The notes beneath the pieces are model-generated. The model did no database searches and was not told the origin of the DNA. It worked only from the letters and a program-made list of their open reading frames with translations. A program made the position numbers and the translations under genes. A DNA stretch of 64,000 nt from sequence record MW021758.1; one strand, 5' to 3'. This document shows positions 7,838 through 57,920 of the stretch, one piece after another (position 1 is the stretch's first letter; the number at the start of each line of letters is the position of its first letter).

Positions 7838-10132
7838 TCAAGGTTTCGGAGCTTCGCCGCCTTTACCAAACTCGTCGGCGTTAACGACTTTAACATCGTT
7901 AGCCTGAGCGGTACGCGCCGCAATTGCTTCTTCCAGGTTTTTCACGGTGATAGACAGCATGATCGGCAGGAAGTTGAAGTAACGGTAGCGCGGAGTCAGA
8001 CGGATTTCGTTACCGATGCGCTGGTTACGGATCATCTGGAAGTTAACCAGGTATTCCGGAATCAGGCCCAGTACGCCGTGCTGCAGCGGGTGCGGCTCGT
8101 CAACGTTCGGCAGCACGAAGGTCATGATGATCTGATCTTTCATGCGCAGGTCGGAGATACGAGCGATGGTGTAGTCGTAACCAATACCAACGGTACGGTC
8201 GTCGCCAGGAATCTGCAGGTACTGCGGCAGACGCATGTCGGTACCGATAGCTACGTGCGGCTTAGGAGTACGGCCTGGGAAGGCAGCTTCCAGAGCAGCG
8301 GTGTAACCAGTCAGCTGGTCAGCGGTGTAAACCATTTCGTTGATCTTGCTAACCAACAGACCCTGAATGTCAGTCTGCTTAGCAGCCGAGGTCAGGTTGT
8401 TCAGATCTTTCAGGATGTCTACTTCGGCTTCCATGTAGTACGGACGCACGTAGTATTGGCCGACACCTTCCAGGCCTTGGTTAGATTCGATCGGGTGCGG
8501 TACGCCAACGCCCAGGTAGGCTTTCAGAGTATCGCGGCGGTTCAGCAGGGTGGTTACTGCGTTGTTACGCATCTGCACACGGTAAGCAGTGGTCAGCGCT
8601 TCGATGCGCGGATACACTTTCTCTTCGTCTTGCAGAGCCGGCTTGATGATAACCAGCGGCGGCAGAGTTGGGATCATGAAGCCGTGTTTCATCACGTCGG
8701 AGTCGATTGCCAGGCCCAGTTCCAGTTGGTTGATGTTGGTCAGACGAGCTTCCAGGGTGTAACCCGCAGCTTCGAAAGTCAGGCCAGCGATCAGAGCGGC
8801 AACGCGCGCGTCGGACAGTGCGATTTCAACGCCGTCTTTGTCGAAGATCTTAGCGATTTTCAGAGGACGTGCGTAGGTTTCGCCGGAGCCGGTTTCAACG
8901 TTTACTTCGCCGTCGATACCAACAGCCAGTTCCATGCTGTAGCCAGCGTCGATCAGACCTTTCAGGTTAGCGGATTCCGCGCCTTCAACGGTTTTGGTTT
9001 CTGCGTTAACAGAAACGGTCGACAGGAATTTCAGCTGCATTTGACGGAAGTTGTATTCGCGAGTTGCGGTGTACGCGGCGTACTGGTCGCGGTTCACGAA
9101 GAAGTTCACGTTTTCTTTGGTGCCGCCTTTGGAAACGGTTACCAGCAGATCTTTCAGCGCGATACGGCTGTCCAGGGAGTCGGAGAAGGTTGGAGAACCT
9201 TTCTGCAGACGAGAAGGAGTCTGTGCCAGCATTGGCAGGTTGAAGCCAACACCGAATTTCAGGTAGTTGGTTTCGAACTCTTCGTTGGACTGAACAACTT
9301 TGCGCGGCGCAACCAGGGTCGGGTCGATGAACTGGTCATCGTTCTCGCCGGTGTGGATGCACGGGATCAGTTCGGTGCTGTTGCTTTCCAGAACGGTGTA
9401 GTCCAGCAGACCTTGCAGGATGTTACGTTTTTGGAATTTAACGGCGTCGCCTTTCAGACCAGTACCCTGGTAGGTTTCCCAGACCATGTTACGGCGGATC
9501 GACATTACGAAGCCAGCTTGGTCAGGAGTGATGATCTGAGTGCGGTAGAACAGTTCAGCGAATGGGTGCTGTTTAGCGGCCATCATGTTGATAGCGTAGC
9601 TGTGTTCACGCCATTTTTCGGTTTCTTTTTCGTCGAAGGATTCGAACGACGGACGGCTGCTTTCCGGCAGAGTCGCGATGGCGCCGTTGGCACCGGAGGA
9701 AACCATGTTGTGGACGATAACGCCGCTTTCGAAGGCCGGGTTAGAATAACCGTCCTTGTAGTAAGCGCCTGGGTTTTTGAAGGACATCGCCAGAACAGCG
9801 GCAGCTTCAACAGCTACTTTGTTACCGTTCTCTTCGATGAACTCGCCGCCATGAACGATGGCGCCGTCAGACTGACCTTGCTCGATTGCGTTTACTGCAC
9901 CAACCGCATCGCTTTGCGCTTCGGCCAGATCCTGGGTCAGGTTATCCAGGGTGCTGTCAACGTCAGCAGCGTTAACACCCAGGTCGTTGTAGCTTTCCAG
10001 AGATACGGACATCACGCCAGCGGCAGAGCCTTCGCCCAGGCTGTTTACGTTGCGCATTACCGCATTGTGGATTTTCTCAACCAGATTTTTGGTCAGGTTG
10101 CCGCGCAGTGCGCTTTTCGATGGTCTTGCCAT
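7838..10132 (-). CDS. Major capsid protein (phiKZ gp120-like)
   Basis: 764 aa with the strongest codon bias in the window. N-terminal propeptide with [S/A]-x-E sites (AVE-A, AFE-S, SFE-S). The motif AAKQHPFAELFYRTQIITPDQAG is typical of phiKZ-like MCPs. Confidence 0.85.
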   Translation of the reverse strand: MARPSKSALRGNLTKNLVEKIHNAVMRNVNSLGEGSAAGVMSVSLESYNDLGVNAADVDSTLDNLTQDLAEAQSDAVGAVNAIEQGQSDGAIVHGGEFIEENGNKVAVEAAAVLAMSFKNPGAYYKDGYSNPAFESGVIVHNMVSSGANGAIATLPESSRPSFESFDEKETEKWREHSYAINMMAAKQHPFAELFYRTQIITPDQAGFVMSIRRNMVWETYQGTGLKGDAVKFQKRNILQGLLDYTVLESNSTELIPCIHTGENDDQFIDPTLVAPRKVVQSNEEFETNYLKFGVGFNLPMLAQTPSRLQKGSPTFSDSLDSRIALKDLLVTVSKGGTKENVNFFVNRDQYAAYTATREYNFRQMQLKFLSTVSVNAETKTVEGAESANLKGLIDAGYSMELAVGIDGEVNVETGSGETYARPLKIAKIFDKDGVEIALSDARVAALIAGLTFEAAGYTLEARLTNINQLELGLAIDSDVMKHGFMIPTLPPLVIIKPALQDEEKVYPRIEALTTAYRVQMRNNAVTTLLNRRDTLKAYLGVGVPHPIESNQGLEGVGQYYVRPYYMEAEVDILKDLNNLTSAAKQTDIQGLLVSKINEMVYTADQLTGYTAALEAAFPGRTPKPHVAIGTDMRLPQYLQIPGDDRTVGIGYDYTIARISDLRMKDQIIMTFVLPNVDEPHPLQHGVLGLIPEYLVNFQMIRNQRIGNEIRLTPRYRYFNFLPIMLSITVKNLEEAIAARTAQANDVKVVNADEFGKGGEAPKP

Positions 10133-57193: not shown

Positions 57194-57287
57194 ATTGTTA
57201 TCGCACCCCAATTAACTGTATCTACCGTAACTTAAGTAGTAGGGAATTAAATGGGACGACTTTACCCGAACGTCTTCGGGCTTTGTT

Positions 57288-57366
57288 TGGGAACCTGAGG
57301 AAGGATTTGAACCTCCAACGGCCGTCTTAGCTGGACGGTGCTCTATTCAGTTGAGCTACTCGGTTC
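57288..57366 (-). tRNA. Atypical tRNA with a GCT anticodon (nominally Ser)
   Basis: Cloverleaf with D stem GCTC/GAGC, anticodon arm CCGTC-CAGCTAA-GACGG, T arm GGAGG-TTCAAAT-CCTTC and an encoded CCA. Several non-canonical features. Confidence 0.7.
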
Positions 57367-57373
57367 ATTGATT

Positions 57374-57458
57374 TGGTGGTAGGTGATGGACTCGAACCAT
57401 CGAAGCCCGAAGGCGACAGATTTACAGTCTGTTCTCGTTGCCGCTTGAGTAACCTACC
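57374..57458 (-). tRNA. trnY: tRNA-Tyr(GTA)
   Basis: GGTAGGT/ACCTACC acceptor, ACAGA-CTGTAAA-TCTGT, long variable arm, GATGG-TTCGAGT-CCATC, and A-CCA. Confidence 0.95.
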
Positions 57459-57472
57459 AGGAATTCGTCTTG

Positions 57473-57624
57473 ATTGGAGTAGGCGCGTAATGTCGCCTCG
57501 TGTTAGTTGCTCGCATCTATCATGCGCTACCTTTAAGGCATTCGAACCCTAAACCAACGCACTAGTGTGCGGAAGTTGTTCCACAACCCGGACGATTGAG
57601 ATCGTACCCTTAAAGCTCTCCAAT
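57473..57624 (-). ncRNA. Candidate ~150-nt multi-branched RNA
   Basis: Closing stem ATTGGAG/CTCCAAT, an 8-bp CTTTAAGG/CCTTAAAG helix, five hairpins and a GGTTCGAAT segment. Confidence 0.6.
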
Positions 57625-57761
57625 AGTTAGTGGGGATCCATCCCCGCTTGTAGCTGAATCTCACTTAGTTACCGACAATCGACCCTGGAGTTAATTGAAC
57701 TAAATGATTACTTGATGCAGCTTCTACATACTTAAACTTGTTGCGTAAAAAAAGATCTAAA

Positions 57762-57920
57762 TCAACGTTTTGCCAAGATCGCTTTCTTGTTCTTCTTACG
57801 CTTATCGGCGTTATGGAATTCTTTAGCAACCTTCTGGGGAATGCCTGCTTCTTCAGCGAACTCTTTGTCGTGGGCAGCGGCAGCCATGAATTGCTCTTGT
57901 TTCTTACTGGTACTAGGCAT
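57762..57920 (-). CDS. 52-aa basic protein missed by the ORF track
   Basis: AGAGGA RBS. MPSTSKKQEQFMAAAAHDKEFAEEAGIPQKVAKEFHNADKRKKNKKAILAKR resembles a small phage family I recall (MPS.SKKQ..FMAA.AH...FA...GIPQ.V.KEF). Confidence 0.75.
   Translation of the reverse strand: MPSTSKKQEQFMAAAAHDKEFAEEAGIPQKVAKEFHNADKRKKNKKAILAKR

Follow-up and report, generated by a model that had tools for sequence, protein, structure and literature searches.

A cloverleaf-like RNA in the tRNA array of a Serratia jumbo phage is a member of a widespread family of phage RNAs without an Rfam entry

It has been known since T4 that stable RNAs whose function is unknown can be concealed in the tRNA clusters of phages. 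The T4 examples, rnaC and rnaD (species 1 and 2 RNAs), are phage-encoded, 120-140 nt long, and annotated as small stable RNAs; they lie inside the tRNA cluster on the tRNA strand, and our reading of the rnaC sequence places a T-arm-like hairpin at its end. To our knowledge, the function of both RNAs remains unknown. GOLLD and ROOL are phage-associated RNAs often found beside tRNA genes. These structured RNAs of unknown function are several-fold larger than the element described here and form multimeric cages (PMC12286853). A further point of comparison is the modular Y RNA YrlA (RF02553), whose genes are located in rsr-yrlBA-rtcBA repair operons (PMC4201824, PMC7790460); YrlA is cleaved by RNase P and given CCA, and its 5' motif GNCGAAN0-1G is a proposed contact for Rsr (PMC4201824). 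Here, we show how an RNA element from the tRNA array of a Serratia jumbo phage compares with these systems, and that it is a member of a widespread phage RNA family absent from Rfam.

The window analysed in this study, a stretch of 64,000 nucleotides from sequence record MW021758.1, comes from a Serratia jumbo phage of the genus Moabitevirus; across positions 57250-57800, it is 100% identical to vB_SmaM_Yaphecito and 99.8% identical to Moabite. The flagged element runs along the minus strand from 57624 to 57473 and is 152 nt long. Near it, ARAGORN and the Rfam tRNA model detect only two tRNA genes, both on the minus strand: tRNA-Tyr(GUA) at 57374-57458 (52.9 bits), which begins 14 nt 3' of the element, and tRNA-Ser(GCU), the next gene in the array, at 57288-57366. 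An RNA of about 150 nt directly upstream of tRNA-Tyr, as proposed by an initial annotation made from the sequence, is therefore found on the minus strand with a gap of 14 nt, and every helix that the annotation had named is present in it. Just upstream of the element, at 57632-57645 of the minus strand, we noted a palindromic hairpin, GGGGATGGATCCCC, which is invariant in six aligned sequences (the window, Moabite, 2050HW, Kodama, Haymo, and Totoro) and could mark where the preceding unit ends or act as a signal for processing.

All parts of the element lie on the minus strand. Its two ends are paired in a 7-bp closing stem, P1 (ATTGGAG/CTCCAAT), formed by the 5' strand AUUGGAG (57618-57624) and the 3' strand CUCCAAU (57473-57479), which bounds the whole RNA gene. 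A two-nucleotide linker, J1/2 (AG, 57616-57617), leads into P2, an 8-bp helix (CTTTAAGG/CCTTAAAG) whose 5' strand CUUUAAGG at 57608-57615 pairs with the 3' strand CCUUAAAG at 57531-57538. P2 encloses a variable arm (57539-57607), which in this copy is a degenerate tRNA-like domain consisting of hairpin P2a (ACGAT-CTCA-ATCGT, 57592-57605), a D-like hairpin (GTTG-TGGAA-CAAC, 57575-57587), an anticodon-arm-like hairpin with a 4-nt loop (CGCAC-ACTA-GTGCG, 57558-57571), and a truncated T-arm (57540-57551) that contains GGTTCGAAT and has 12 nt fewer than in close relatives. The purine-rich linker J2/3 (GUAG, 57527-57530) then connects to hairpin P3 (CGCAU-GAUAG-AUGCG, 57512-57526), the A-rich J3/4 (AGCAACUAACACG, 57499-57511, ending in UAACACG) to hairpin P4 (AGGCG-ACAUUACG-CGCCU, 57481-57498), and a single A, J4/1 (57480), returns to P1. 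When compared with shuffled sequences, the minus-strand fold has a z-score of -2.15, with 3 of 200 shuffles folding equally well, and the plus-strand fold is no better than shuffled sequence (z = -0.56). Of the tRNA-like ends suggested for this RNA, the 7-bp end stem is there; the 3' CA that follows the closing stem is present in the window copy, but it is not conserved in relatives and does not amount to a conserved CCA-like end.

Comparison with homologues establishes that the element is a conserved cloverleaf-like four-way junction in which the junction strands and P4 are almost invariant. Members of the family share the same order of parts: the 7-bp P1 with the ends paired, AG, P2 bearing an insert at the tip, a linker rich in purines, P3, a linker rich in A that finishes with UAACACG, P4 (AGGCG/CGCCU), a single A, and the 3' strand of P1. 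The window copy has the P1-AG-P2 arrangement, with a P2 that opens with C and closes with G, and the succession GUAG-P3-UAACACG-P4-single A at 57480-57530. The AG after P1, invariant in alignment A3, is found in 115 of 129 pattern matches; J2/3 is usually GUAG, nearly all members having GGUAGC or GGGAGC at this linker; the loop of P3 is often GNRA in other members; and the first and last positions of the P4 loop switch jointly, U occurring with A or A with G. The UAACACG block and the single A of J4/1 are likewise invariant in A3. As most homologues were retrieved with a pattern derived from J3/4 and P4, the invariance of this block is in part circular, but UAACACG is also kept in homologues found by BLAST, which were chosen independently of the pattern. 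Two divergent copies that R1 detected near rtcB deviate only slightly, having UAAAACG instead, with P4 unchanged.

In the alignment of 24 diverse homologues, 96.5% of cells are standard pairs, and 14 of the 24 pairs change on both sides. These changes amount to 117 double-change cells, compared with 36.5 +/- 5.5 in shuffled alignments, none of which reached 117 in 500 attempts, and sliding the partners by 1-3 columns lowers pairing to 30-48%. All covariation falls in P1 (5 of 7 pairs changing on both sides), P2 (6 of 8 pairs, 99% of cells paired), and P3 (3 of 3 tested pairs, 100% of cells paired), while the five pairs of P4 never vary. The inner hairpins GTTG/CAAC and CGCAC/GTGCG belong to the variable arm and lie outside this result. 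The covariance search suggested by the initial annotation thus found the pairing of P1, P2, and P3 conserved and covarying in relatives, and its proposal of a selected fold about twice the size of a tRNA is borne out by these compensatory changes and by the 152-nt length matched end to end by a covariance model. This model, R1, was built from the 24 members, the window copy included; with it, the window copy reaches 114.3 bits (E = 2e-30) and is the sole match in the 64-kb window. Members left out of training obtain 28-114 bits, in agreement with manually assigned coordinates. Moreover, RNAalifold recovered P1, P2, the T-arm, P3, and P4 unaided from eight enterobacterial-phage members, and the minimum-energy folds of four distant members form the same four-way junction. 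A candidate pseudoknot between GUU at the top of P2 and AAC in J3/4 is unsupported, since GUU varies while AAC does not.

The family extends far beyond Moabitevirus. BLAST searches with the intact copy found homologues of about 74% identity in Erwinia jumbo phages (Machinavirus), flanked there by tRNA-His and tRNA-Glu, and matches to the 3' half in 85-kb Ounavirinae (Kolesnikvirus and Salmonella phages), in Pectobacterium, Yersinia, Klebsiella, and Citrobacter phages, and in the giant phages CBB and fHe-Yen9-04. Scanning for the exact pattern of the most conserved block retrieved 42 IMG/VR contigs and 109 stretches of metagenomes. A stricter pattern with five additional fixed bases matched only 2 of 185,579 species genomes, an Acidobacteriaceae MAG and Bosea, in both cases beside tRNAs. 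The family is therefore phage-specific and almost absent from cellular genomes. After removal of duplicates, viral and metagenome contigs provided 97 distinct copies of full length, measuring about 86-290 nt; two shorter rows (51 and 55 nt) were probably delimited wrongly. Hosts are diverse, including Gammaproteobacteria, Alphaproteobacteria, and Acidobacteriota, and GC content ranges from 44 to 67%. Five complete genomes from four unrelated lineages contain exactly one R1 match each, and T4, T5, and Felix O1 contain none. Some viral and metagenome contigs (L048, L169, L181, L184, and L196) carry two family copies about 140-360 nt apart; in L048, these lie at 8867-9082 and 9283-9459, the second without P3.

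Close relatives of the window copy clarify the nature of its variable arm. Six Moabitevirus relatives (2050HW, BUCT660, ParM-25, Kodama, Haymo, and Totoro) have 12 extra nucleotides in the element, which is identical in five of them and differs by one base in Totoro. These nucleotides complete a T-arm, TAGGG-TTCGACT-CCCTA, with a 5-bp stem and the loop TTCGACT, and restore a CCGGA strand as the partner of TCCGG, indicating that the inner part is a small tRNA-like domain. The intact-T-arm version is also carried by environmental relatives in wastewater and freshwater contigs, among which the wastewater runs labelled as RNA may be DNA. The corresponding 12-nt deletion is common to the window, Moabite, and Yaphecito. 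The T-loop-like GGTTCGAAT is hence correctly traced to a T-arm, complete in the six relatives, but in the window copy it is only a deletion stump, and T54/Psi55-type modification would be expected in 2050HW-like relatives rather than here. Since the deletion has damaged the arm and left the core intact, the core rather than the arm appears to be the indispensable part.

The damaged T-arm also bears on the least favourable alternative, namely that the element is a decaying remnant of a tRNA gene or a small open reading frame without function at the RNA level. In Moabite and pEa_SNUABM_9, short ORFs are indeed annotated across the element as hypothetical proteins (CPT_Moabite_075, L001 1784-1915, and pEaSNUABM9_00076, L008 1215-1352). 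These two ORFs are on opposite strands in the two phages, however, and are probably spurious; the variation among homologues is explained by compensatory base changes and not by codon conservation, and the core is kept across phage lineages that have no other DNA similarity at this locus. Contradicted by the covariation, this reading is hardly credible. The tRNA gene adjoining the element has been replaced in Kodama, Haymo, and Totoro while the element itself is unchanged apart from one base in Totoro, a constancy that counts in favour of its being under purifying selection, as judged from these sequences.

Set against 57374-57458 of the window, Kodama, Haymo, and Totoro show that tRNA cassettes are swapped around a fixed RNA gene. 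The different tRNA directly downstream of the element is annotated as Asn-gtt in Haymo and as Tyr in Kodama. In Totoro (L005 1586-2191, minus strand), the tRNA 3' of the element is split, about 40 nt in, by an HNH nuclease ORF of 606 nt, which may be an intron or a homing-endonuclease insertion in the tRNA gene.

Across the family, the arm at the tip of P2 is exchanged freely and very often resembles tRNA. At its smallest, in the minimal member (L043, 86 nt in total), the insert is a 14-nt loop; at its largest, it reaches about 170 nt. A canonical T-arm is found in 38 of the 97 inserts, against 0.25 expected from shuffles, and another T-loop-like hairpin in 23, against about 7 expected; by the criteria applied, the remaining 36 of 97 lack a T-loop, so that members can do without a tRNA-like arm. 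The insert of the enterobacterial subgroup opens with a small hairpin, after which comes an almost complete tRNA-like domain, whose T-stem covaries within the subgroup and whose acceptor-like stem has 7 bp in several members and 5 bp in the Serratia copies. The insert of phiEa104 is annotated in GenBank as tRNA-Undet, with a tRNAscan score of 42, and ARAGORN was unable to assign an anticodon to it. A different solution is found in L015, where the insert is a permuted tRNA-like module made of a T-arm, a closed acceptor hairpin, and a D-arm, while small members have two hairpins with 7-nt loops of the UGNRAAN type. The tRNA-elbow module, in canonical, permuted, and double-T-loop-like forms, has apparently been acquired several times, and the presence of different elbow-like modules at one site suggests selection for such a module, though not a universal one.

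The resemblance to tRNA (RF00005) raises the question of whether the element could be a highly derived but functional tRNA or tmRNA-like molecule, tailed with CCA, aminoacylated, and acting on the ribosome. Its helices succeed one another as in a cloverleaf: a terminal stem of 7 bp leads through a 2-nt linker to three arms and a 5-bp 3'-proximal arm; its spacing in arrays is tRNA-like; and many members nest a T-arm, a D-arm, and an acceptor-like domain, the acceptor-like stem of phiEa104 and L041 being 7 bp long with G.U as its third pair. Nevertheless, the element is twice the size of a tRNA and has no anticodon loop, the loops of P3 being mostly GNRA tetraloops; P4, the 3'-proximal arm, has no T-loop; CCA is not encoded and the 3' flank is not conserved; and the 3' end of the nested domain is not free. 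ARAGORN and the Rfam tRNA model, at the gathering score or E <= 10, give no match on 57473-57624, ARAGORN reports no tmRNA, and the Rfam tmRNA model misses the element as well. Run on 38 family members, ARAGORN made odd calls on only five (such as tRNA-??? and intron-containing Val). A derived tRNA or tmRNA is thus a distinctly improbable identity for the element.

Rfam 15 was scanned with the window, five family loci, the 86-nt minimal member, and L015. Neither at the gathering score nor at E <= 10 was anything found on the window element; in the five family loci, no match other than to tRNA fell on the element, and the minimal member had none at E <= 10. Besides tRNAs, the scans returned a YrlA module in L015, below threshold, and elsewhere a few weak matches attributable to chance. 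The absence of an Rfam match, together with the far larger size of GOLLD and ROOL, sets the family apart from those RNAs. Among the papers searched, we found none describing the core motif and none specific to phage tRNA-like noncoding RNAs of this kind; a catalogue of 10,006 viral candidate RNAs may contain the family (PMC10690425). Resemblances to RNase P J11/12, SRP helix 8, 5S loop E, the sarcin-ricin loop, 16S h44/h45, and hairpin-ribozyme loop B, noticed by eye, were all short or in permuted order and were dropped as chance.

YrlA bears the closest parallels in design. Both RNAs are modular, with paired ends that form the partner-binding part in YrlA and an internal tRNA-mimic module with T and D arms; the family is sometimes found beside rtcB; and the arm of L015 matches the tRNA-like part of the Rfam YrlA model (23 bits, E = 0.006, model positions 23-85). 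That match excludes the Ro-binding stem of YrlA and is the only one to the permuted domain, at a score well short of the gathering score of 69 bits; in the window, the only YrlA match covers the tRNA-Tyr and tRNA-Ser genes and none falls on the element. The family core (AG, GUAG, UAACACG, AGGCG/CGCCU) is unrelated to the YrlA stem, and most family arms are either tRNA-like without permutation or not tRNA-like. The motif GNCGAAN0-1G is absent, the window element having AUUGGAGAG at its 5' end and many environmental members having NNCGAGAG, which is similar only. Finally, no Ro60/TROVE gene (PF05731) is present in the carrier genomes Moabite, phiEa104, ChrisDB, CBB, and fHe-Yen9-04, with control genomes responding to the same search, and a Pfam scan of the ORFs neighbouring the element gave zero TROVE matches. 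Membership of the YrlA family was rejected, as every defining feature tested failed. Homology to T4 rnaC and rnaD was also rejected: searching the T4 locus (L009) and the complete T4 genome with R1 gave no match, neither RNA contains the core motifs of the family, and only the tRNA-cluster context is common to them and the family.

The element sits in phage tRNA arrays, on the strand of the tRNAs and with the spacing of one of them. A tRNA on the same strand lies within 15 nt of 39 of the 97 copies and within 100 nt of 52, and in eight loci (L014, L018, L026, L030, L031, L032, L041, and L043) the gap on one side or the other is 1-10 nt, which is ordinary tRNA-tRNA spacing. In phiEa104, a promoter-like site (TTGACA-17-TAAATT with an extended TG) ends 10 nt before P1, and a second promoter-like site is found past the element. 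Given the tRNA-like spacing and the promoter-like site of phiEa104, the unit bounded by P1 probably corresponds to the mature RNA. We also observed tRNAs with a CUA anticodon, labelled Pyl by ARAGORN and resembling amber suppressors, in two loci: in the jumbo-phage contig L014 (29-103), where the tRNA adjoins the element, and in L039 (9301-9375), where it belongs to the same array at about 3.4 kb from the element.

Five loci without tRNAs (L012, L013, L020, L053, and L079), in which an ORF on the same strand starts 13-106 nt downstream, would fit a cis-regulatory element, either a riboswitch-like aptamer or a signal for the processing or stability of neighbouring genes. We regard this as very improbable. 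The downstream genes are mutually unrelated, encoding an HD-domain protein, NrdD, RtcB, and proteins without an assignment; rtcB is upstream rather than downstream in L033 and L028; P1 closes the fold with no overlapping expression platform; and what lies 3' of most copies is a tRNA and not an ORF. When the neighbour genes of the 97 loci were clustered, rtcB was the one identifiable enzyme gene to recur immediately next to the element; the cluster with the most members is a small protein that matches DUF7097 weakly and below threshold, and ribonucleotide reductase is found near the element three times.

The gene for RtcB, the RNA 3'-phosphate ligase, lies 100-280 nt from the element, on the same strand, in four distinct loci (L028, L033, L043, and L180), and within 5 kb in L017. 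In L028 and L033, the order is rtcB, element, tRNA-Pro, and in L043 it is element, tRNA-Pro, rtcB. Among an independent sample of 80 phage rtcB loci, two have a divergent copy just upstream of rtcB, one of them without any tRNA, and the other 78 are without the family RNA. RtcB is not encoded in Moabite, phiEa104, ChrisDB, CBB, or fHe-Yen9-04. An obligatory partnership with RtcB was therefore rejected, considering these five carriers, the 2 of 80 positive rtcB loci, and an adjacency of about 4% (4/97); this adjacency is a weak lead, which may be confounded by the tRNA arrays. As an observation in its own right, the family RNA, tRNA-Pro, and rtcB form a module in L060 (3410-4001), L033 (5125-6446), and L043 (4599-6004), to which tRNA-Gln and tRNA-Arg are added in two of the three loci, and which looks like a portable cassette for the replacement and repair of tRNAs.

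The occasional proximity to rtcB is also compatible with a self-cleaving or otherwise catalytic RNA whose junction would be the active site cutting the tRNA-array transcript; the resulting products, with a 2',3'-cyclic phosphate and a 5'-OH, would be natural substrates of RtcB. Freely varying helices around a near-invariant junction are the pattern of small ribozymes, and a position between tRNAs is one where processing is needed. However, tRNA arrays already have RNase P for their processing, rtcB is missing from the vicinity of most copies, and neither a conserved candidate cleavage dinucleotide nor an alternative fold was seen. Rfam 15 models of known self-cleaving ribozymes and riboswitches do not match the family element, no ribozyme match appearing even at E < 10 on the 86-nt minimal member. 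A catalytic role is accordingly unlikely in our assessment.

The best explanation for these observations, to which we give a probability of about 0.5, is that the element is a stable noncoding RNA of about 150 nt, from a widespread phage family, that acts in trans as a tRNA-mimic adaptor or decoy; the ribozyme, derived-tRNA, cis-regulatory, and pseudogene readings are less likely. We infer the expression, ends, and stability of the RNA from sequence. It would be cut from the array transcript by the tRNA-maturation machinery, with the 3' end set by RNase P cleavage of the downstream tRNA and 3' trimming back to P1, and the 5' end set by RNase P or by transcription initiation. Working in trans, the RNA would use its invariant junction to dock specifically with a partner that many bacterial hosts have in common, a protein or possibly a small ligand, and the P2 arm would display a mimic of the tRNA elbow. 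When phage and host contend over the integrity and repair of tRNAs, the RNA would in this way mimic tRNA as an adaptor or decoy, in the manner of the modular Y RNA YrlA. Going one step further, and tentatively, it is possible to envision a new class of phage RNA, a Ro-independent functional analogue of Y RNAs, in which the core would dock a universally conserved bacterial factor or bind a small ligand and the interchangeable elbow module would recruit or trap a tRNA-directed enzyme, protecting or repairing the tRNA pool against host immunity that targets tRNAs.

The family constitutes a second, far more widespread case of a stable RNA in phage tRNA clusters. Its comparative signal is unusually clean, the 86-nt minimal version is suited to structural work, and several carriers are amenable to handling in the laboratory, among them the Erwinia phages phiEa21-4 and phiEa104, Salmonella phages of about 85 kb, and Serratia jumbo phages. 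The family merits an entry in Rfam, and the spurious ORFs placed across the RNA in several GenBank records merit correction. Beyond annotation, a near-invariant junction combined with a tRNA-like module that has been repeatedly re-plugged points to a specific, conserved, and so far undescribed interaction with the host. Should the partner of the RNA act in the maturation or repair of tRNAs or in immunity directed at them, the family would represent a new RNA-based layer of the arms race between phages and their hosts.
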